Part shown: positions 38,058 to 51,424 of the stretch, piece by piece
Layout: the number at the start of each line of letters is the position of its first letter
Numbering within the stretch: position 1 is the stretch's first letter
Assembly: GCA_977016875.1 (NCBI GenBank)
Contig: CDRNST010000104.1
Span: 5,332,001 to 5,396,000 of the forward strand
DNA from: Pavona decussata
Taxonomy: Eukaryota
DNA: 64,000 bases
Direction: 5' to 3'
Notes under the pieces: model-generated
The model's database searches: none
Told to the model about the DNA's origin: nothing
Seen by the model: the letters and a program-made list of their open reading frames with translations, nothing else
Position numbers and translations under genes: made by a program

Positions 38058-39498
38058 GCTTTCTTTCTCACTGTGATATATCTATTGAGCACGTTTTTTT
38101 TGGGCACCAACATGGCGGATAGCAACAGTTGTCAAGGCGGAGGTCACGTGGGTGAAAACCAAGAATATTACAATAAGGCTCTGAACCTGTACAATGTTGA
38201 TGACATCAGAACCTGGAGAACAATCTGTCCCAGGTGCAACATAGCGAGGACTCTACTGTGCTCGCCGATGTGCTGTTTCTAGCAATTTGAACTTCTGTTT
38301 TTTTTTTCTCTTGATTTTTCTTGTTTATATATAAGTAGTGTAAGTTTTTAAGTTTGAAATAATTAACATGGGATCTGCTGTAATTGGCTATTAAGGTAAT
38401 TGGCTGTAGTGGTCTCTCTGTCTAATAAATTTTTTCACGTATTCATGAATATAGATCCGTATCTGTATTTAAGTTAGGCAAAGCAAAAAAAATAAATTTA
38501 ACAGATTTGAAGTCCAGAAACAGATCTCACTAAACTGAAGTCCTTAACAGAAGAATACTACAGAGCCAATGCACTGTTCTCACCATCTGCAGTAAATCCA
38601 ACTAGTAGGACAATTGGGCATGTTTTGCCTGTGCACAATAAGCAAATTTATGACATCTACAAGCAGGTCCTTTAAACAGTCACGATAGAGGGGAGGGAAG
38701 CAAAGCATATTGTATTGCACAAGTTAAGGGTAAACACCACATAGCAGCAGAGGCGGAAAGAAATATTCAAGCATGAATTTGTCATGCAAATATGGTTACC
38801 AGAACCTTGTTTCTATACCCCAAGCAAAAGTGTTTACATACCCTCCTGGATTTTCAATGACTCTTGTTTCTGCTATTGTGGTTTACAGAAAGCAGATCCC
38901 ACATGTACAAGCTGTTACTTTTGCAGTGATAACCTTTTTTCACTCATCCATGACAGTGACAAACAGGTAAAAATTTTATCTGGTTTAGCTAAGTAGCTGT
39001 CTAGAAAATGTCTGCAAAAGGGATGAAGCCCAAAAAATATTATGGATATTTCATCCGCGAAAGTGTAGAGGAGGGGAACATTTTATCTACTTTAGCTAAG
39101 GCTACTTAGAAAATGTACTCAAAAGGCAAGAAGCCCAAAGGGATATTATGGATAGAGTTCTGTTGTTAAAAGCAAGTGTCCTAGGTATTGCACCAGCGTA
39201 AGACATTTGTTTATGTTTACCTTACTGAATGGGATAGCATTTATTATCACTAACTCATCCCAGTCAGAAATGCACAATTTAATTTGTTGAAAAAGTTTCC
39301 ACACAGAAAGAAAAGCAATGTTTCTAAATATAACGTTTTATTGACTGTTTGAACTTGTCTGACATATAATTTAAAGTTGTTCATTTTCAAATAAAGTTGT
39401 TTAACTGAACTCATAATGCAACTGTTCTGTTGTTATGCACCTGTCAATGTTAAACCCAGAGGAACAGGTAGATGAGATGCATTCCCTTACAGAATTTA

Positions 39499-39815
39499 AA
39501 TATACTTTAAGTATACTTCTGGTATACTTCTTATGTACTTTCTGGGGAAAAAGTACATTTGAAGTATACCTTGTTTGTACTTCAACAAAAAAAGTATAAA
39601 TGAAGTATATTTGGCAAGTGTACTTCATTTATACTTCAAATATTTAAGTATACTTCAAGTATACTTCTTCAAACTTCAGTGCTTGTGAAAAATATTTTCC
39701 CAAACAAAAGTGTACTTTAAGTATACTTTAAAACTTAAAAACACACTTAAGAATATATTAGAAGGCAATCTTTATAATCACTCCAAAACAAAAGTATACT
39801 ATAAGTATACTTCAA
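39499..39815. repeat. Left subterminal array of the palindrome AAGTATACTT
   Basis: 5 exact copies (39509, 39646, 39657, 39719, 39803) plus several 1-2 mismatch variants. Confidence 0.95.
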
Positions 39816-39859
39816 CTTTAAATAACAATTTCAGTGTCCTTCTATTACGATCATGTCAT

Positions 39860-40005
39860 TAGGAAAGAAAGAGAATTTCAACGCTAGAAAGCAAAGGAAA
39901 AATTCTGAGCTCCAGGCAAGAAAGGAACTCACGACCCTCCAAGTTCTAGATCGGACACTCTAACCACTTTGCTACTGGAACTCGCATGGCAAGAAGGGTT
40001 GGAAT
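39860..40005 (-). mobile_element. Degenerate tRNA-derived SINE
   Basis: The minus strand shows A-box-like GTAGCAAAGTGGTTAGAG and B-box-like GAGTTCCTTTCT, followed by GGAGCTCAGAATTTTTCC. Confidence 0.55.
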
Positions 40006-40403
40006 GTAATTACAAATATGCATGTTTTTAGAAATCAGAGTTTATCAAAAAAGCCAGTAAGATTTTGCATTTCAATATGGACTTATAAAATCAATTTCAA
40101 TGTAATGAACTCTTTTATAAACTATTAGGAAGCAAAAAATAACATGCACATTCAAATGCTTTTGATGAAAGCAGCAAAAGTAATATTATTTGCTTGGAAT
40201 TTTTACCTTACTATTTTTTTTTCTTCAATTTCACTTTTATATATTTTAATATTTGTTTGCACAAGTGGAAATGGAGCTTAAGTACAGGTACACCTAAAAG
40301 ACTGGAAGAAAACTTGAAATACCAGTCTAAATTACGGAAATAAGTACTACTTTTTAAACTGTAAATACAGTACATACATGCAAAGAATTAAGAGTATGCC
40401 ATA

Positions 40404-42098
40404 TCAGTCTTTCTCATATCTGTTTGGTAGCTTACAGACAAACATACATTTGTCGTGTTTGCAGTCCACAAAAATGCACAGAGCTTTGATACTCGTAATA
40501 GGGAAGATCACATTACTAAATTCTTCTTTCCTAACAGGAATAACATGACCCAGTTTACAATCAGTGAACTCATCAAACGACATTCTGATGTCAGTGGCTG
40601 GCTTCAAACAGCAGTCAGCTATACCAAAGTAATGTGGAGTCTTGCAGGTGCATGCATCTGTACAAAATAAAACATTTGGGCATTGCACAAACAGCTTGAC
40701 ATAACACTTAACTTGAACAAATCCTAAATCCTCCACAAAAACAGTGTAACTATTTCTCCGCGAAATATTTAAATAGCTTTTGCTATGAATAACGTCTCTG
40801 TTCATTTGGATCCGTTTAAATATGAAAGCTTTGGAGATAAAACCTGTCTTGTTTTCAATAAAACCTGTAAGAGCTGCACTCAAAGTAGCTGGTGACATAA
40901 CACCAAGTGCAAATACATTGTCAGATATTTCCTCACGTTTGCACTTCAAAATGAACCTTCCACAGGTCATGTGCTCATAAAATTCTTTGCTAGCTGAACC
41001 TGGAAGAAGCAGTGGTATAAGTTCAGGAATTTTCTGCTGTACACAAACAGAAAATGCGATTTGTAATTCCACTTTTTGTGTTCCATGAAATAAGGTTCTC
41101 AAATCACCATTATAATCCTCGAACCAGAAGCAAGAGGTAGCCCATAAAGGACCAATGTTCTTCACACAATCATGGAGATGAAGAAGGCAGTGAACATTAA
41201 ATGTCTCATATCGGCTCCCATACAAGGCTTCAATTCGCAGACAAAAGTGCCGCAGGAGGTCACCTGCTTTCTGTAAGCACTGAGGTGAAATTGAACTCTG
41301 ATCTAATAACCAGATTGCTTCCACGAGCAAAATGAAATGTTGAAAGTATTCATCAGGTAAAATATTCCACAAACAAGGAATACCATAAAAAAACAGAAAT
41401 GATCTAAACTCTGAAGCTTTCCAATGAGGAAGGTCCTTTGCAATACTTCTTGGTGCCCGAGAAATACAATTGGGTGGAGATATATTTATCAAGCGACTGT
41501 CAACATCTTCAACTTGTTTGCTTATGCTCCATTCTTCAGTTGCATGCGTCTTGTCGAACCACAGTGTCATAAGCATTTTTGTGACGCCCAGAAGAACACA
41601 GTGCATGTAATCCACTGCAACACCTTTAATAATATCAAATCCAGGTATAAACATAAACCATGAATGTCCCTTAACTCCACAGACAGGTGAATATTTTCCC
41701 TCAAGTTTTGATTTGTGCGCTAGATATGCATACTCCAGAGTGTTCTCGTGGGTACGATCTGCTCCATAACCTGTTAACGGGTTTTCTCTGTTGAATGGAT
41801 AGGCATGGGTATGTCCTCTAGCACTTGTTTTTACACTGGTTCCCTTATGCAAGCAATAAGGACACCCGCTAAAACCATTGAACTGCACAAAATTTTGCAT
41901 TAGGCACTTAGCTGGTGCATCCATGGTACCACTTAACAAAATTCCTCTTAAAGTAAGGTCTCTTCCTTTACTGTCAGTAATTACCATTCCTACAAAAGAA
42001 ATTTATTAAAGAAAAACATGTCAGTATAATAGAACACGGATATGTATTTTTTATTCAAATTGAGACAAAATAGCACATACAAAGCACACCACATTGTA

Positions 42099-42150
<52 letters not shown>

Positions 42151-45145
42151 TGAGTTAAGTTGGCTTTGTTGGGGCTCTTTTACTGTAGCCAATATTAACC
42201 AGCCCTATTTCAGCCGATTTAGGAAAGGATGGGTACAATCCCATACCTTCAAATGTACTGGCAATTAAGGGAAATTTAATCCCCGTTACCAAGATGAAAA
42301 ATGTCAAAAGGCCCCCAAAATACCCGTAGAATCATGTTCCACCTTGTCAGCGACCTTACAAACCATGCCCAGTCGAAAATGTTTCGTCACTAACAGTCCC
42401 GGTATCCGGGCTGGAGTGTTCATATGGGAAAAATTTCCAGCTTGGTTACTGAGATCTCGGTAACCGGGCCAGCCCGCCTTGTCATAAGAACACATTGAAG
42501 TTTTTGAAAAGAAAAGAGTGGCGAGGCGAGATCTCGGAAACCAAGCCAACCTGGTCGACCGGGCTCTAATATATACAATAAAGGTATTGCTTTCCCCACA
42601 TTTCTCTTATCTACATTGGATTTTGATATTACATTTTGTGACATCTTTGTCCCAGAGTGCCAGAATTGATCTGTTTACGTACACAAATCTTTACCTTCGG
42701 AGTATATGTCTTGAAACTCTTTGCTTAAGGGTTGCAGAAATGTCAAGAAATCTGGTTTTTTGTAACCAAACCACAATCCAAGAAAAATGCTATTGGATCT
42801 TGCAAACCTAACAACAAACAAAATACAAGCAATATCACATTAGATTCACAGCAAAAACTGAATTTCAGCTATGTTTAGAGAAATTGCTAGGAGAATAAAT
42901 TAATAAAAATTTATTGCTTTGTTTCATTATGATAATTAACTGACCTATTTTGATTAAGATTATTAGCAAGTCCTAAGTTAAAAAAAAGGACAGTGCTTTG
43001 AGGTCAAGTCTCTACCATCTCTAATGTCACCTTCTTTGTTACCAGACCCTCTTGTCTTATAACAATAATTGTTATTAATGTCAGCCATAATACTAAATAA
43101 ATATTCTACAAAATGTAACTACAAATATCATATCGAATACCATATGTATACCTGCAGTTTGGTGGAAGCTCATTAAGAACAAGGTAAACTGGCCAAATAC
43201 TGTATTTCGAGGACCTAAAGAGGGCCACCCCATCAGTATTGATCTGAAAGCTTATGTGGATTTCAGTTTTCTTTTTCTCATCTGAAGCACCCTTAAAAAA
43301 CCCATCATTTCCAAAATGCTTCTTGTACAGCAATCCATCTTGGATGTCTTCAATTGCAACTGAATTGCTCTTGGTTCTGGTAACTGGATATTTGATGAGA
43401 TCAAGAATGCCAGATTCTGAAAGAAGATTATATGATTATATGAAGATTACTATATTCCTTTTTGGAAAATTTAAAATAATCAATTAACAGTAAATTTTCT
43501 CTGTATAAAAATGAAAAGTAACATTCAATTATTTATTAATTGCATTCATTATTCTCACTATTATCAATAATTGATAAGTATAATTTTTGTAAGTATTATT
43601 TCAAGTCCATACATGGACTTGTTGGTTTGTAATATGCAGCTATCCTAAAGGTCTTGTTCAGTATGAAATCAACAACTGCTTTTTACTGCAATTTAAAAAT
43701 TTTGTACTCTTTCGAACCAATAAATTTGAACTTAACTTGGAATGAAATCTATTCATTGTATAATGTTGTGTAGTTAAAAGAGAGAAGGTCAAACTTATCA
43801 AAGAAATGCTGCTTTTTGTGGTAAACAGCTGGTTCTTGACAATCTGCGAGCCAGTGAGCCATGCGAGGCAGATGTGCGGGGCACTCAGGTTAGCCTAAAA
43901 AAAAACTCCGGTTAGCCTAAAAAGCACTCTGCCTAGCCTAAATAGCACTCAGGTTAGCTTAACAGTTAGCATTTATGTTAGGGGCTGTTCATGCCTCGCA
44001 AGCCTCGCATGTTTTGTTCTGCCTTGCATGGCTCGCACATTGGCCACACTCTAAACAGCTTCCATTTGAATGCCTGTGTGAGACCAGAGCCCATTGTATT
44101 GTATTGCTTATTTTATACTGTTTTTTAACAAATTATGACAAAGTCAAAGACCACTTACTTTGCATTAGGTCCCTCAACTGGCACATAAGTGGAATAATGA
44201 TGAAGTAAGAAGAATTTTCCTTCTTGCTCAAATCCTTCAAACAGCATTTGTTCTTACACAATTTATCCTCTGGTATAGACAGCCCCTGATATTCCATACA
44301 AAATGTACAATAATAGTGGAACTGGATCGGATTCTTTAATTTCATAAAAAATTTCTTGAGTAAGTCCATTGAAGAGGCACATTCATTTGGCACCCTGGCA
44401 CCGCACAATGGAGGCTAACAAGTGTCAACAAATCAACAATGGCAAGTCCAGTTAAACTATGACGAATAGCGAACGTTACAACAAGTAGCATGCTAACTGC
44501 CACACTTATAGGTGCCCCTTTGTACAAGGGAGTATCTGCAAACATACATGTATTCTCTTCCGGCTCTTCAGTGAAATTGTCACCGTTGGTGTGGCTAGTG
44601 TTTTCATCAGAGTAAAAAGCAGCCAGATACTCATCAACGCAGTTGTCGTACAGTTCATCTTCAAAAGCACCTATCCTGGTTTGTTCTGACTCAGAGGGGG
44701 CAGAAGTTTCTTCGTGTATGATATCATCTTCTGGAGGTTCGCACTGATTACTCGGAGACTCGAAAGATCGATCGTCTTCATCGTCATGCGTCTCGTATTC
44801 ACTCAAAGATTTTTCTGAAGAGTTATCAGTTTGATATAAAGAGCTGAGCGATAATTCAGAGCCAACCGTCTCCATGTAATCGGTAACAATGTCAGTGCTG
44901 CTATGGAAGTCACTGAAGCTATCGTTCGACGTCGTGGGAAGATCATCCGCCGAATTTCCTGTGGGTGAAATTGACGTAGTCGCACAGTTTCTTTCTGGCC
45001 ATTTCTTTAAGGTCGTTCGTGGAATTTTCGCATTTGGCTGAGAAAGGTACTGGTTGTAAGGACCACGTCGTTTTACGTCCTTTTCGCGAGAATCTGAAGA
45101 AACAGAACGAGAACTGGAAGCAGTATCATCGGCCATCTTTTTCAT
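40404..45145 (-). pseudogene. CACTA/EnSpm transposase, 4 exons, 980 aa after removing one 8-bp duplication
   Basis: Exons 45145-44159, 43416-43152, 42807-42695 and 41989-40404, all GT-AG and phase-compatible. Motifs: DIQDG, INTDGV..SIWPV..NELPP, LWFG..KP, GTMDAPAK..QFNG..GCPYC, DYMHCVLLG, WKASEFR, NVHCLLHL..GPLW..FWFEDYNG. The only lesion found is the frameshift at 44388-44403. Confidence 0.92.
42100..42570. repeat. (ATT)n microsatellite and a MITE-like insert in transposase intron 3
   Basis: ATT run at 42100-42150. A GC-richer segment at 42280-42570 carries repeated GAGATCTCGG(T/A)AACC and ends GACCGGGCTC-TAA. Confidence 0.6.
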
Positions 45146-45339
45146 GTGCAAAGTGTTCGATTACCGCTGACTGGCAAGACGAACGGACCATATACGGGAT
45201 CTTGTAGATTTCCTAATATGGTTGTGTATGAACATTTTGGCGGGCGATACCGACTCAAAGCAGTTCGTTGCGTTCAGCTTCGCCGACCAAAGTTTGCAAC
45301 GCTTGAGATATTGCCTTTGTCTGTTTTTTCGATTACAAT
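45146..45339. promoter_or_regulatory. Putative compact bidirectional promoter / 5'UTRs (194 bp)
   Basis: CpG-containing gap between the two head-to-head start codons (45145 minus, 45340 plus). Function is inferred from position only. Confidence 0.5.
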
Positions 45340-48300
45340 ATGAGTGGCTCAAGACAAAACAAAAGAAAGAGTACACCATCGTCGAAGTTTGGCAATACAA
45401 GTAAGTTGTGGTGTTGAAATTATCGGTTCTAAGCATGTAGATTGTGTAAATATAACTTCTGGTAGGCGCGCGCTAAACACGTTCTTGAATCCTTGAATGT
45501 TTCAAACAATTTGTTGGTTGTTTTCATGGCTAAAAAGTGCGGCAGAGGTTCTGAAAATTAGTCTGTTTTGCCATTGATTGAGTCTGTCATAGATGTCGCG
45601 TGTAAAATTATTATAGAATAAATTTTGGTGTAATCTCGTCAATTTCAATTCTCCTGCTCTCCGCTCGCGCGCCGATTGATCGATTAAGCGTCTTCTCTCT
45701 TCGCTATGCGAAACTTCTGCTCTTCGTACTTCTCTTGCATTCCAGAGTCGTATAGTGGCTTGAAAAAACGACAAAAACCAAAAAGCACGACGCCTCGATT
45801 TTTTCAATTCATGTGTTGACGTTTTCTTGCCTTAAAAATTGTAGCATTAGTTCATGAAATATATTTAATAATTTTATCTGCCATTATATTGATTCCATTT
45901 GTAGAATTTATTCTGGTTCAGTTTATTGAGGACAGCGTTAAAGTTATTGTGACCGAAAAGGAACTTATGAAGGAAGGTGGTACAACCAAAGCTATGTATC
46001 TAGACAAGAAGTATTATCCTTGTGTTGTGCTGAGTGAAAGTGGTAAGTTTAATACTTTAATTGGTTTGTGATTTACTAACTCGGACTTAGTAGAAGTAGA
46101 TGCCCTAATGGCATTTACACGGAATGCTTAATGTAGCCCCATTTATATATTCCCATTGTATGCCTCGCAGATTTTTGAAAACTATCCTCCCTTCGGAATT
46201 GAAATAATTGAATTGTTTTATTCTGAGAGACTGCGTGATATTTTATTGTTGTGTTACTGGGAATCATACCGGAAATTACTCTGTGATAACGTCATGACCC
46301 CGCTGAACTTGACTGCCTTCCTTCGCGTTGAATTATTCGATCTGTTTGTGAAAGTGGAGTTTCTTCGCTGTGAACTCTCCCAATTTCCATCGTTTAAACC
46401 GTCGAATACTTAGAAGTTATTATTTCGTTTTACCGCCGGAAAAAGGTTTGTTTTATTTCTGAAAACGGCAGGTCAGAGTCTTAAATTCATACATGTGGCC
46501 GCCATTGAACAAAAACAACCTTTCAAATGATGATTTGCTTTGACGTCACACAGGTAAAGATGAGTGGGTCCCCTTCCTTGTGATATACGCGCCGATAATG
46601 GTTTTTGATTGGGCCGTTTTTGTTTAAGACAATCAGAACAATAGATCCCTCCTAGGGGGAGCAGAATTTAATCCAGGTTTAATGAAGAAATCAAGTGATG
46701 ATTTGACATCAAACAGGAAGGGATGAGTGGGTTCCCTCCCTCGTGATATGCGCACCAGTAATAGATTTTGATTGGGTCGCTTTTGATGTAGACAATCAGA
46801 ACAATACATCCCTACTAGGAGAGGACAGAGTTTAATGCATAAATTATTGTGCAGATTTGTGACTACGATGAAGAAAAAAATAAGATACCCGGGCCAAACC
46901 TAGACATGGCCTGCCCTTCGGCCATCCTGTGTAATAGTATGATTTTTATTGAAATTTGCCACTGTTTGAAGTATTCAAAAATAACCTGCCATTAATCCTT
47001 AGCTAATAACTAACTCTGAATTTTTTTTCTTGGGGCAGATGATAAAGACCAGTTGATCAAAACAAAAACTTCAATGGAGTCCACATCCAAAAAAAAGAGT
47101 AGTACTGTGGCAACACACAAAGGGAAAGGCAAAGCCAACAAAGAGCCTGCAGCTCAAACGAATGCAACAGGAAAAAGTAAATCAAAAGAAAAGCAAGCAG
47201 AAGAAAAAAAAATACAAGAAGAAAAGAAGAAAGAAAAAGTGCAGAAGAAGAAGGCCCTTGATGAAAGGGATTTTAATATTCTAGGGCAGTTGTCACTACT
47301 CAATAAGTCGGTGGTAGTGATTGATGAGCAAGGCAGAGATATGGAGGAGAAAGAAAAAGAGCTGGAAAGAAAAAAGGAAGAACTAGAGCAAAGGGAGAGA
47401 GAAGTACAGAGGAAAGAAGGAGAAAGAAACAAGGGAAATTGTTTAAATTCCAGTGAAGTTGTATTCAGCAACTTAGAACGTATTATCGCAAGCCCCTTCA
47501 GGGATGAAAGTGATGAGGATGAGGAAAACGAAATGGACGATTTCAGTAAGTACAGGCTTTATGTTCTCTAGATACATAATTGCATGTGAACAATAATTAT
47601 TGTTTCCGGTCAAGATTAAATTTAGGTTAAAATTTTTTAACTTAGGTACCTAGGAGACAACAGAAATTGAGAATCAACCTAGGTTGAAAATAATACCCTT
47701 AATATAATTTAATTTTTACCTGTAGCATAATCATACCAAACCGTACTAGTCTAGATGTTACTCATCTTCAAAGTTTAAATCAAATAAATTTTCCTAATAA
47801 TTGTTTTTGCTGTAAATCTTAATTTATTATAAACACATACAGCAATTAATAATCACACTTCTATTTCAGCATTCAACACACTGCCACAACAGAATGTTTT
47901 TAGATTCCTTACTCTAAATTTGTGCTACGTACATGTATATTGTGTTAAGAAATTATAACCAGGCTTTTCTAGTCAAAGCATGAAATATAAAAACTGTGGA
48001 TCAAGTTTGATTTATAAATGTTGTGTTTACATTATTGTCTAGGTCCCAATGATAGTGGCTCCAACTCAACGGCTGACATTGACATAACAGAAGCAAGTAG
48101 TCTTATCACATCTACTCCCAAACATGTAAGACCAACTGTTGGCATGAAAAGGCCAAGAGCAAACCTAATTACTAAAGCCAACAAATGTCCAAGAAGGCAG
48201 GGTGGGCCAGAATGCACTCAGTGTCTCCACCTGTTAGCGGAAAACAAGGAACTGAGGGATGCCAATGCCTTGCTCACTGAGCAGCTTGCTCAGTCAAGGG

Positions 48301-50185
48301 AGGCTGCAGCAGATCTTCAGCTGAGTGAAGCCCCTAGACCTGGCAAAGTGCCCAGAGCAATTGCTGAACGTAACAAAGTAAGATTTGTTTTGGGCTATAT
48401 CAAACAAAGCATAATAATGAAGGGTTGCCTGGAAAAAGCCTTTAGTGATGTATGATTAATTCACCTCATGTGAACTGTGTTGTATTTCCTTGTACAGGGA
48501 GAATTTAATGTATCGTTACATATCAAGTCACAGCCTTTTTCATAGTACCTCTTAACTTATATGATTGGCTGCAAATTGTTATGTTTTAAGATTCTTTAAC
48601 AACAATCAAAACTGTCAAGCCTTACACAGAAAGAGGTTGCTGACAAGAAATGACAGGTTCATGTTATTCACAGTTAAAACCTTGTGTAGACTGACCTCTT
48701 GTAAGAAACCATAATTTATTTGCTTAATCACTAGTTTTTCAAGGGTTCAACTGCAATAAAAACCTAGCTAATTAATTGCACTTTCTTAATAGTAATTAAA
48801 TGCAACAGACATTTCCACTGTAATATAAATTAATTTTATTACTTAGCAGGGAGGTGCATGAGAGTAGCAATCAAGTTATTTTGTTTATAAATTTATACAT
48901 GTTCTTTAAATAAGTGTATAGGCATTAGGGAAACATAACCCTGAAACATGTGCTCTTTCTATAAAGTATTTCTTTCTTTTGCAATCTTGTACCCAGATAT
49001 CACACCGTGTCCTTGGTGACTGAGTGTTTGGTAGAATCAGCTTCATTCTCCAACCAGTACAAACAGTTTCACCATTTTTGTGTAGACTTCAAAACAATGT
49101 ATGCCAGTGTACATTTGCATATGTGAGTTTACCATGACACAAAACAACTCTAAAACATGTGCCCTTGAATGTCAATCTCTAAAGTATTTATAAGAACTTT
49201 TTATTCCCTGAAGAGTGAAAAGATCTGGGTACAAGATTAAGTTTTTTGTTTCTTTGGGACTGAGATGCACTCAAAATATGATTGTTCGCCATAAAATTTG
49301 TGTTTAAACAAATAAATGGTACTGGCAAGTGTTTTAGTGACAAAAAAAAAAAAACTACTAAGGTCCATGCAGATGTGAATGTGTGATGCATAAACTCAGT
49401 AATTACCATATATATGTTGTTGCTTGCAGATGATAGAACTGTCTCCTGGACAAAGGGTTTTTGTGTATGAAAGCCACATTACAAAAGCTTTTTCAAAGAA
49501 AACAGCTACAGCAACAGCCTGCTTCTTGCTTAACTGTTTTTACAAGGATGACGAACTGATAGGCAAAAGCCTAACTGGTAAAAACAACAAGCCATGCCTG
49601 GATACTGACATCCTCAACAGTATCCTGAGTAAGAGTTCCTTTATACAGTTATATTACACTTCATTAAACAGCTCACTCACTAGAATGTTAGGTCATTGCA
49701 CACACAAAAAAAGAGCCCTGGCTAGATTAACAAATTAAACAAAATTTTGATCTAGATATTACTGGTAGTACATAAAAACATAATTGCATGTGAACAAAAA
49801 AATAAATGTATCATTTTATATAAGATGCAGTCACATAACAGCAAAGAACATGTAGAGCAAAGATGGCATTAGCCTTTACCGCTTACTCCATATTGCCTCC
49901 TCCTTGCATGACAGATGCAAACTAGTGAAAATATTTTCTCTCAGTTATTAGGTTAATTTAATTGAACGATGACTTGCTACTTTTGTCGCCTTGTTCAAAT
50001 GAAATGAGATTAAATTTTTATCATTATTTTACTCTGAGACTTTTGTACTACACATTTTTATTTTTGCAGGCTACACAAGGAAAAGATTCCCTAACCAAGT
50101 TTCCGACAGTGCAGTAAAAATTGCACTGCGGAACAAAATAACTTGCGTGGAGGCCAAGTCAAAAAGGAAGACTCCTGTTGATTAA
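45340..50185 (+). CDS. Intact 6-exon, 451-aa protein with charged coiled-coil and C-terminal BEN domain (accessory gene of the CACTA element)
   Basis: Exons 45340-45400, 45905-46042, 47039-47545, 48043-48377, 49430-49628 and 50070-50185. All are GT-AG with matching phases; total 1356 nt with no stop. The C-terminus ATACFLLNCFYKDDELIGKSLTGKNNKPCLDTDILNSILSY..F.....VKIALRNKI fits the BEN pattern. Confidence 0.85.
46535..46835. repeat. Diverged ~163-bp tandem duplication in intron 2 of the BEN gene
   Basis: GATGAGTGGGT...AGACAATCAGAACAATA at ~46558 and ~46721. Confidence 0.8.
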
Positions 50186-50844
50186 CTCTTTTTTATTTAT
50201 GAAATGTAAATTTTTGATTAGAAAATGACTTACTTATTTTTTTATCTGTAAAAATACCTCAATGTTATAAATCTCAATCAATAGCTGTGAATGTGCACAT
50301 GTATACCATGATAATTTATTAAATTTCATCAACATCAAAATTACATTATAGTGATAATTAACCCAGATCTAAATGAATTTAGGAAGAAATTTGAAAACAT
50401 CGTTGGGCCTGAACATTAACTTATCCAAATAGCATTCAGTATTTTTTCAAAAAAAAATCGTTAATTTTCTTTCCACCTTTCAGATTTTATTATACTCTTT
50501 GTTACATTGGGCTTTTATAGTACTATCAAAATGTAGAAGCATTCTGTTCCAGTTTTTGTGTGTAAAAGTTAGACATAGTATTTCATTAATAAAATAATAG
50601 AGCACTTTACTTTGCAACCAAAGAGTCCATAATAAACAGGTATGATATATACTATAGACATCTAAGTTATCCTGTGTAAATAGCAAAACATGAAAATGAT
50701 TTTATCAACTGATGTCAATTGGCCATTATAGAGAGGTTTGAGCACTTTAAACAACTCAGGTGATAAAACTAAATTTTCATGTTGCACTCCCATTTGAAGT
50801 GGCACCCCAATTTCTTGATAAGCTAGCCAAAAACATTAATATAC

Positions 50845-51060
50845 ATGAAGTACATTTAAAGTATACTTTTAGTACACTCCAAGTACACTTCTTGGAAAGT
50901 ACACCTAAAGTATACTTCTTGTGAAGTATACTTGAAGTATACTTTTTAAGTGACCAAAAGTACCCTACTTTAAGTATACTTTTTTAAGTATACTTAAAGT
51001 ATACTTGAAGTACAAATGAGGTATACTTTTCTTAGTGTTAAAAAGTATACTTTAAATATA
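50845..51060. repeat. Right subterminal array of the palindrome AAGTATACTT
   Basis: 8 exact copies (e.g. 50859, 50908, 50924, 50935, 50972, 50986, 50997) plus AAGTACACTT-type variants. Confidence 0.95.
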
Positions 51061-51424
51061 CTGAATTCCTACAAGGGTTTGATGTAGTCTTTGTCCAGTC
51101 CCACCCTCAGGCATTTGACTGACAAATTTACCACCAGAATGTACTCAGAAAGGGAAATAAACTTTCCAACATGAGGGAATTTGACCTGATTTTGGCCATT
51201 TTGTTTCCCTTGGAGGGGCTTTTGATAAAAGTTCAAATCTCCACCCCTTGCCTGATTCCTCACCCTCGCTTAATCATGCAATCTCTTAACTCTGAAATTC
51301 ATACCCAAATTCATTCCACAATCCATAATGACACGTTACAATGACCTTCATTCGCTTGTGATCCTAACAAATTATAAAAGGCTTGTTCTCATCCACTTGT
51401 ACTTCTGCTCTGTAATTCTTTCAA

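Follow-up and report, generated by a model that had tools for sequence, protein, structure and literature searches.

A two-gene CMC transposon of a stony coral that pairs its transposase with a predicted BEN-type DNA-binding protein

Two-protein DNA transposons are represented by En/Spm, which works with TnpA in plants, and by PIF/Harbinger, which works with a Myb-like protein. Does an animal relative of En/Spm carry a DNA-binding partner of its own, and of what kind would it be? The question is raised by a 64-kb stretch of the genome of the stony coral Pavona decussata (contig CDRNST010000104.1, positions 5,332,001 to 5,396,000), called here the window, to which all plain positions refer. Positions 39484-51077 of the window are a bounded DNA transposon of 11.6 kb, in which a transposase gene and a second gene are read away from each other from the centre. 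Judged from sequence, the element is an EnSpm-Mirage-Chapaev (CMC) transposon with an accessory DNA-binding protein, here predicted to be of the BEN type. Sequence comparison further indicates that the pairing is a conserved trait of the element family, within the coral genome and across phyla, and is an old two-gene design rather than an accident.

Anatomy of the element and its two genes

The boundaries of the element are marked by short duplications of the target, inverted terminal repeats, and dense arrays of a short motif just inside them.

39482-39483, no strand: left 2-bp target duplication TT; 2-bp duplications are likewise found at the insertions on contigs C66 (GT) and C54 (AA)
39484-39518, plus strand: left terminal inverted repeat, starting CCCTTACAGAA
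39498-39812, no strand: left subterminal array, 11 copies of AAGTATACTT with at most 1 mismatch, four pairs with 11-bp spacing
50859-51052, no strand: right subterminal array, 10 copies of AAGTATACTT with at most 1 mismatch, two pairs with 11-bp spacing
51043-51077, minus strand: right terminal inverted repeat, minus-strand reading CCCTTGTAGGAA
51078-51079, no strand: right 2-bp target duplication TT

The original prediction, made from the letters of the window, had bounded an element at 39484-51077 by terminal inverted repeats and a TT duplication, and the 35-nt ends with TT on both flanks were confirmed. The repeats are imperfect, being 77% complementary over 35 nt, and the ends follow CCCTT(A/G)(C/T)AG..., not CACTA. 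End sequences CCCTTACAG and CCCTTGTAG are common to all copies examined in the coral genome. The motif of the arrays, AAGTATACTT, is a perfect palindrome of 10 bp. Its exact form occurs 13 times in the window, and 13 of 13 copies lie within the terminal ~330 bp of the element. When one mismatch is allowed, the window holds 25 copies against 3.2 expected, 21 of which fall within the two arrays, and six pairs are exactly 11 bp apart. In the same count across the window, the central spacer and the surroundings of both start codons were free of array sites.

The transposase gene occupies the left half of the element and is read from the minus strand.

44159-45145, minus strand: transposase exon 1, an acidic and serine-rich start followed by a cysteine-rich block; the donor at 44159 is spliced in RNA contigs of runs X6, X11, and X12
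44388-44395, minus strand: 8 extra bases within exon 1, a tandem repeat of 44396-44403, which shift the transposase frame and are absent in contigs of all four RNA runs
43152-43416, minus strand: transposase exon 2, whose NTDG motif contains the first catalytic D; weak Pfam matches to Transposase_21 and DUF1258
42695-42807, minus strand: transposase exon 3
40404-41989, minus strand: transposase exon 4, 527 codons and a stop, with the second D, CxxC, HxxxH, and E

Exon 2 carries the motif NTDG...WPV...NELPP and matches PF02992 (Transposase_21, E 4.6e-4) and PF06869 (DUF1258, E 5e-5), both under the Pfam cut-offs. The 527-aa last exon has no Pfam match. It does have 303 database relatives, found in corals and bivalves, in one gastropod, one starfish, and one nemertean, and in Lingula, Ptychodera, and Clytia; the closest named homologues belong to Acropora, Montipora, and Porites. 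Homologues are 38-50% identical, and the full-length relatives bear both PF02992 and PF06869. Four features of the last exon, D23, C42xxC45, H266xxxH270, and E290, are invariant across 14 homologous sequences. Toward the N-terminus, exons 1b and 2 align colinearly with a protein of the scallop Pecten maximus, with which the cysteine-rich block is also conserved.

The D/CxxC/HxxxH/E motif set has been assigned to the EnSpm-Mirage-Chapaev-Transib (CMCT) clade, and the target duplications of this CMCT group span 2-5 bp while 'most' of its ends read 5'-CA..TG-3' (PMC12730594). Both the motif set and a duplication within that range (TT here, GT at C66, AA at C54) are present in the coral element, and by its motifs the enzyme is of the Transposase_21/DUF1258 (CMC: EnSpm-Mirage-Chapaev) kind. 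The label "CACTA-type" of the original prediction holds for the Transposase_21-kind enzyme and for the short-motif arrays at both ends. It fails for the CACTA...TAGTG ends, which are replaced by CCCTT..., and for the 3-bp duplication, which is 2 bp here. It also fails for the origin of the second protein: strict CACTA elements make TnpA by alternative splicing from a shared transcription unit, whereas in the coral element a gene apart, with six exons and on the other strand, encodes the second protein.

A four-exon transposase of 980 aa had been reconstructed. The exons are real, and contigs of X6 and of the oligo-dT RNA-seq runs X11 and X12 show the splice of intron 1 (44159 to 43416). In the assembly, the 8 extra bases at 44388-44395 bring a stop at codon 267, and the frame runs for 981 codons if they are omitted. 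The 980 aa are the length of the expressed form, which lacks the 8 bases, and not of the assembled copy, so this copy, described as complete in the original prediction, is not fully intact in its transposase. With a frameshifted transposase, the assembled copy could move only with enzyme supplied by another copy or allele.

The second gene begins 194 bp from the start codon of the first and fills much of the right half of the element.

45146-45339, no strand: 194-bp spacer between the start codons, covered by RNA contigs end to end
45340-45400, plus strand: BEN gene exon 1, with the ATG at 45340; junction 45400>45905 in X6
45905-46041, plus strand: BEN gene exon 2, a small N-terminal module that diverged copies and Desmophyllum also retain
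47038-47545, plus strand: BEN gene exon 3, lysine- and glutamate-rich, of low complexity
48043-48377, plus strand: BEN gene exon 4, a CxxC and then a leucine-rich stretch (helical by eye) that precedes the BEN domain
49430-49628, plus strand: BEN gene exon 5, the first two thirds of the BEN domain
50070-50185, plus strand: BEN gene exon 6, the last BEN-domain helix and the stop codon

This structure matches the earlier model of a six-exon, 451-aa gene exactly. All five introns run GT to AG, and translation from the ATG at 45340 continues without a stop for 451 aa. In run X1, contigs join 46041>47038, 47545>48043, 48377>49430, and 49628>50070, and those of X6, which carries a different species label, join 45400>45905 and 48377>49430. 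RNA contigs thereby contain five of the five junctions that had been predicted. The X1 contigs are not genomic DNA, because four introns are skipped in them, and nowhere in the assembly are exons 4 and 5 joined without their intron. Loose contig ends at 45125, 46154, 47650, 48325, and 48368 carry sequence that was not found in the window.

The original prediction described the spacer as a head-to-head promoter of 194 bp. The figure is correct as the distance between start codons, and the promoter within it is a predicted one. RNA contigs run across the spacer. An X6 contig covers 44159-45400, and an X1 contig extends from before 44100 to 46041. One X1 contig begins its unbroken course at the start of transposase intron 1, crosses exon 1 and the spacer, includes BEN exon 1, and is spliced thereafter. 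Because the spacer is crossed without a break, an overlap of transcripts at their 5' ends is probable. The contigs carry no strand information and may merge two divergent transcripts that overlap there, or they may come from one long plus-strand transcript that is antisense to transposase exon 1.

What does the second gene encode? Its exons 1, 3, and 4 have no match in Pfam, and neither have most homologues. The N-terminal module (45907-46041; residues 1-80 of the homologue P0150) is conserved in the copies on C66, C54, and C273 and in Desmophyllum, and it has no Pfam match. A structure search of the ESM Atlas with this module returned unnamed clusters, with the Tudor-knot of ARID4B, one of the small beta-barrel readers, and the N-terminus of BEND6 (TM 0.49) as weak leads.

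The C-terminal part is more telling. Here the BEN domain is split by the intron between exons 5 and 6, so the exons were searched singly and fold models were made on homologues. A scan of 1.84 billion representatives with exon 5 gave 79 relatives. The full-length ones are P0181, a spliced transcript contig with a near-identical twin in the clam Tegillarca (P0200), P0199 from Pecten, and P0150 from Desmophyllum pertusum. When the family profile was compared with 177,635 sequences of the PDB, it matched BEN chains only, BEND6 at E 0.003 and then BANP, and it also matches canonical Pfam-BEN exons elsewhere in the coral genome. The AlphaFold model of P0181:205-325 has a pLDDT of 92, and BEN domains fill the first 20 rows of its Foldseek list, with TM 0.65-0.75. 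The model of P0199:290-408, from the neighbour protein in Pecten, has a pLDDT of 93 and lies nearest to Insv (Z 13.0, rmsd 2.0 over 98 residues), BANP (12.7), NACC1 (12.1), and Bsg25A (12.0). Its rows 1-16 are all BEN, after which Z drops to 3.7. Word-index searches led from the BEN part of P0181 to 3 proteins and from the N-terminal part of P0150 to 1 protein. A homodimer prediction for P0181:150-325 scored 0.20 against a mark of 0.32, which is not evidence either way. On these models of its homologues, the BEN fold is established for the family and very likely for the protein of the window. The C-terminal BEN domain of the original prediction is upheld by the homologue models, whose nearest solved structures are BEN, and not by Pfam, whose cut-off exon 5 does not reach.

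The resemblance to known BEN factors (Insensitive, Elba/Bsg25A, BANP, NACC1/2, BEND3, and BEND6) lies in the C-terminal fold, which in BEN domains is largely helical and has two short strands, with Z 9-13 and rmsd 1.9-2.6 Å over 83-107 residues. It extends to the placement of the BEN domain at the C-terminus behind a helical stretch, and the known members bind short palindromes as dimers or as pairs at fixed spacing. These factors differ in being host genes, whereas the coral gene lies inside a transposon, and sequence identity to them is 14-19%.

Other BEN sequences were met along the way. At least 38 BEN exons score above the Pfam cut-off genome-wide, several of them in identical copies. Four, on contigs C78, C126, C206, and C274, score identically and share a frame length of 192 aa, a hint that further repeated elements carry BEN genes. 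At G000:C104:5399862-5400071, 3.9 kb past the window end, the minus strand has a canonical Pfam BEN exon (32.9 bits). The 366-aa protein P0125 joins a piece of Mutator-like transposase, a Myb/SANT-like domain, and an exon-5-like BEN piece (65% identical), and is probably a chimera of neighbouring transposon fragments produced by gene prediction.

The gene pair in other copies and other phyla

If the BEN gene belongs to the element, other copies should carry it. The coral genome searched comprises 602 Mb in 1180 contigs, and three further families in it have both genes. Family 2 is made up of two copies, C66:1413190-1426232 and C54:91006-115375, which are 97% alike, with large insertions in the C54 copy, and which lie at different sites with different 2-bp duplications, GT and AA. 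Their identity to the window element is ~75%, with similarity only at the two ends and in the exons of the two genes, and both genes are present in them and diverge in the same way. In a further family, on C88, the transposase is 49% identical to that of the window, and 5.6 kb upstream the other strand has a BEN-like exon (E 4e-35), again in the same layout. The remaining copies are less complete: the C273 family has the left end, a decayed transposase, and a retained exon 2; C175 is a 90% copy without the transposase body and exon 4; and C326 is a fragment. Since family 2 and C88 keep the divergent pair, the search for further copies proposed with the original prediction spoke against a one-off capture. 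For five more distant transposase families of the coral genome, the link to BEN was judged from coordinates alone. One CMC-type transposase frame (40% identical, 470 aa open) lies outside the element at G000:C104:5411206-5412603, 15 kb past the window end, in what looks like a neighbourhood dense in transposons.

Both genes were constrained while the families diverged. Between the window element and family 2, pN/pS is 0.24/0.75 (~0.3) for the BEN gene, with pN ranging from 0.21 to 0.24, and 0.13/0.67 for the transposase, with pN ranging from 0.10 to 0.14. Silent sites are saturated, at pS 0.67-0.76. Saturated silent sites together with low pN imply that both genes were under purifying selection during the divergence of the families.

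The same arrangement recurs in distant animals. In Pecten maximus, a search with the transposase and a search with BEN exon 5 independently reached the same locus, where an 882-aa transposase (P0059) stands head to head with a 408-aa BEN protein (P0199). The Pecten element is ~20 kb long, both of its ends read CCCATACC..., and dense arrays built on the palindrome AAGTTATAACTT lie at both ends. In Lingula, the divergent 395-aa neighbour of the transposase holds a BEN-like exon (E 1e-11); the ends there are unreadable, the gaps being written as N. In Ptychodera, the element is ~13.4 kb long with ends CCCTTACGGAAA, inverted at 12 of 12 positions and nearly equal to the coral left end; in the comparison with CACTA ends they read CCCTTACGG. 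Six copies of its palindrome GTAGATCTAC are split between both ends. On this sequence comparison the divergent transposase/BEN pair is present in Pecten and Lingula and probably in Ptychodera. Because CCC ends, lineage-specific palindrome arrays, and the divergent pair recur across phyla, the design is conserved.

A related BEN gene is also found in the coral Desmophyllum pertusum at L047:10290-20551 (MU825406.1), recognised by matches to exons 2 and 5 and followed by a cluster of eight cores AGTATACT, the central letters of the palindrome that the window element carries. The 10 kb upstream of this BEN gene hold no transposase match, and the locus may be a deleted or solo copy.

A possible role for the BEN protein

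The best explanation of the locus is a two-gene, cut-and-paste transposon of the CMC (EnSpm/CACTA-Mirage-Chapaev) group, from a clade marked by CCCTT ends, by target duplications of 2 bp, and by a 10-bp palindrome arrayed under both ends. One gene encodes a DDE transposase of the Transposase_21/DUF1258 kind. The other, read in the opposite direction from the element centre, encodes a protein of 451 aa, which starts with the small N-terminal module, continues through a charged linker and a short stretch rich in cysteine and leucine, and ends in the BEN domain. The BEN protein is proposed to bind AAGTATACTT palindromes as a dimer, using site pairs that lie one helical turn apart. Binding would thereby mark or join the two ends for the transposase, a job comparable to that of TnpA in maize En/Spm or the Myb-like protein in Harbinger. 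We look to the BEN protein as the reader of the palindromes because the sites are palindromic, are often paired one helical turn apart, and sit at the ends only, and because solved BEN domains bind such targets. The BEN domain of Insv binds a 12-bp palindrome in a 2:1 complex, and that of NACC2 prefers paired palindromes 10 nt apart (PMC8887127). That two other lineages, Pecten and Ptychodera, have subterminal palindromes of their own fits the idea of binding. Confidence is high in the element's anatomy and in a BEN partner throughout the family. For the TnpA-like role the scales are nearly level, and the explanation as a whole statement is favoured with moderate confidence.

Several observations weigh against this explanation. 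The runs X1 and X6 were labelled RNA by guess, though their contigs skip introns. Exon 5 matches Pfam BEN (PF10523) at E 1.4e-3 with 19.2 bits, under the gathering score of 23.2, and the homologue P0150, at 19.5 bits, is also under it. The fold evidence stems from homologues 41-42% identical to exon 5, and exon 6 matches the last BEN helix of P0181 in short and weak alignments (E 0.006 and 0.04). In Ptychodera the divergent 371-aa neighbour gives a match to the BEN side that is nearly full-length but weak (E 0.04), and the Clytia transposase homologue has no BEN-like neighbour at its locus. Exact ends number five in 602 Mb, a very low copy number, and the other copies are decayed, being truncated or interrupted by stops or frameshifts, which together with the frameshifted transposase of the window leaves current mobility unsupported. 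Finally, the cysteine-rich N-terminal block of the transposase could equally be the binder of the arrays, as in single-protein elements.

This last point opens a different division of labour, in which the transposase reads the palindromes itself and the BEN protein serves as a regulator (a repressor or activator of the element genes), as an anti-silencing factor like VANC of Arabidopsis VANDAL, or as a tether to host chromatin. That the cysteine-rich block is conserved, and common to the Pecten protein, agrees with it, as does the fact that most BEN proteins known so far regulate transcription or act as insulator factors. Accessory proteins with sequence-specific anti-silencing activity are described for other DNA transposons (PMC10398659), and the hint of overlapping divergent transcripts would call for regulation. 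Yet the sole repeated short motif sits at the ends, with no visible regulator site in the central spacer or near the start codons, and paired palindromic sites match the known binding modes of BEN domains. We regard this division of labour as unlikely, although it deserves serious attention. The very low copy number and the decay described above, for the window transposase included, would also suit a pair that no longer moves in the coral and survives as a relic, or as a locus domesticated for the host, which several coral species would express from one fixed position; RNA contigs that are 95-99% alike occur in runs under two species labels and "coral metagenome". Against such a fixed locus, both ends, both arrays, and the 2-bp duplication remain recognisable, and expressed versions of the transposase lack the frameshift. 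The family 2 copies, 97% alike at different sites with different duplications, indicate evolutionarily recent movement of the two-gene element, and a loss of mobility is accordingly held to be improbable.

Could the BEN gene be a passenger, a host gene captured once and without a role? DNA transposons do capture pieces of host genes, and the BEN exons of the coral genome (at least 38 canonical ones) are possible sources. The same gene nevertheless keeps the same divergent position in four transposase families of the coral genome, in Pecten, in Lingula, and probably in Ptychodera. It is spliced with an open frame, and its pN stays at 0.21-0.24 where silent sites are saturated. The passenger reading was rejected on the family-wide and cross-phylum pairing, the open spliced frame, and the low pN, and is close to refuted. 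A chance open reading frame was considered as well and rejected.

A bolder extension of the end-binding role would make BEN the obligatory end-binder of an animal-wide CMC clade with CCCTT ends and a 2-bp duplication, predating the split of cnidarians and bilaterians. BEN would then have co-evolved with the palindrome of each lineage, and the host genes Insensitive/Elba, BANP, and BEND, and perhaps the viral BEN genes, would descend from such partner genes. This extension is speculative and seems rather doubtful at present.

Likeness to known systems and nested repeats

Plant En/Spm, with TnpD and TnpA, is the natural point of reference. The coral element resembles it in short inverted ends followed by dense subterminal arrays, in a second element-encoded protein, and in a size above 10 kb with introns (PMC4219821, together with general knowledge). 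It differs in its CCCTT... ends as opposed to CACTA, in a duplication of 2 bp as opposed to 3 bp, and in drawing its second protein from a separate divergent gene where En/Spm uses alternative splicing of one transcript. TnpA is unrelated to the BEN fold predicted for the coral partner, the arrays are built from a perfect palindrome of 10 bp, and the promoter region is central rather than at one end.

Among animal CMC elements, Mirage and Chapaev share with the coral element an animal host and a transposase with a further match to DUF1258, which is a family from C. elegans. A 2-bp duplication is the value given for Mirage in the Repbase classification. The coral ends differ, reading CCC..GGG in place of the 5'-CA..TG-3' of most CMCT elements. 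No BEN partner gene described for Mirage or Chapaev was found in the literature searched. Full-text searches, which had Repbase and subscription journals outside their scope, likewise returned no link of BEN with EnSpm, CACTA, Chapaev, or other DNA transposons, and thus no backing for the remark in the original prediction that BEN-transposase associations were already on record.

PIF/Harbinger is a parallel of another kind, a cut-and-paste element that encodes a separate DNA-binding partner (predicted as such in the coral case) beside its transposase. Harbinger movement needs both the transposase and the Myb-like protein (PMC2836001). For the coral element, the purifying selection on the partner and its retention across phyla speak indirectly for a similar need. 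The two systems differ in transposase superfamily, which is unrelated, in partner (Myb/SANT as opposed to BEN), and in the 3-bp duplication of PIF/Harbinger, which has no comparable palindrome arrays.

If the BEN partner is indeed conserved with the transposase from corals to molluscs, brachiopods, and probably hemichordates, the element would be a third, animal-wide case of a two-protein DNA transposon. The pairing places the BEN domain in mobile DNA. To our knowledge, the domain has been known so far in animals and a few animal viruses only, and its origin is unclear. The palindromes AAGTATACTT, AAGTTATAACTT, and GTAGATCTAC, as candidate sites, and their matching BEN domains would form a natural series on how BEN domains read DNA. 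A compact set of invertebrate transposase, partner, and ends could also serve as a genetic tool.

Two repeats unrelated to the element are nested in its introns.

42266-42566, no strand: high-copy repeat in transposase intron 3, at least 35 copies of 83-90% identity elsewhere in the genome
46098-46936, no strand: high-copy repeat in BEN gene intron 2, more than 40 copies of 84-91% identity elsewhere

The ~300-bp repeat at 42266-42566 is probably an insertion of a SINE (short interspersed nuclear element) or MITE (miniature inverted-repeat transposable element). The ~840-bp repeat at 46098-46936 often occurs elsewhere in tandem-like clusters, and it contains a direct repeat of 132 bp (46525-46656 and 46688-46819).

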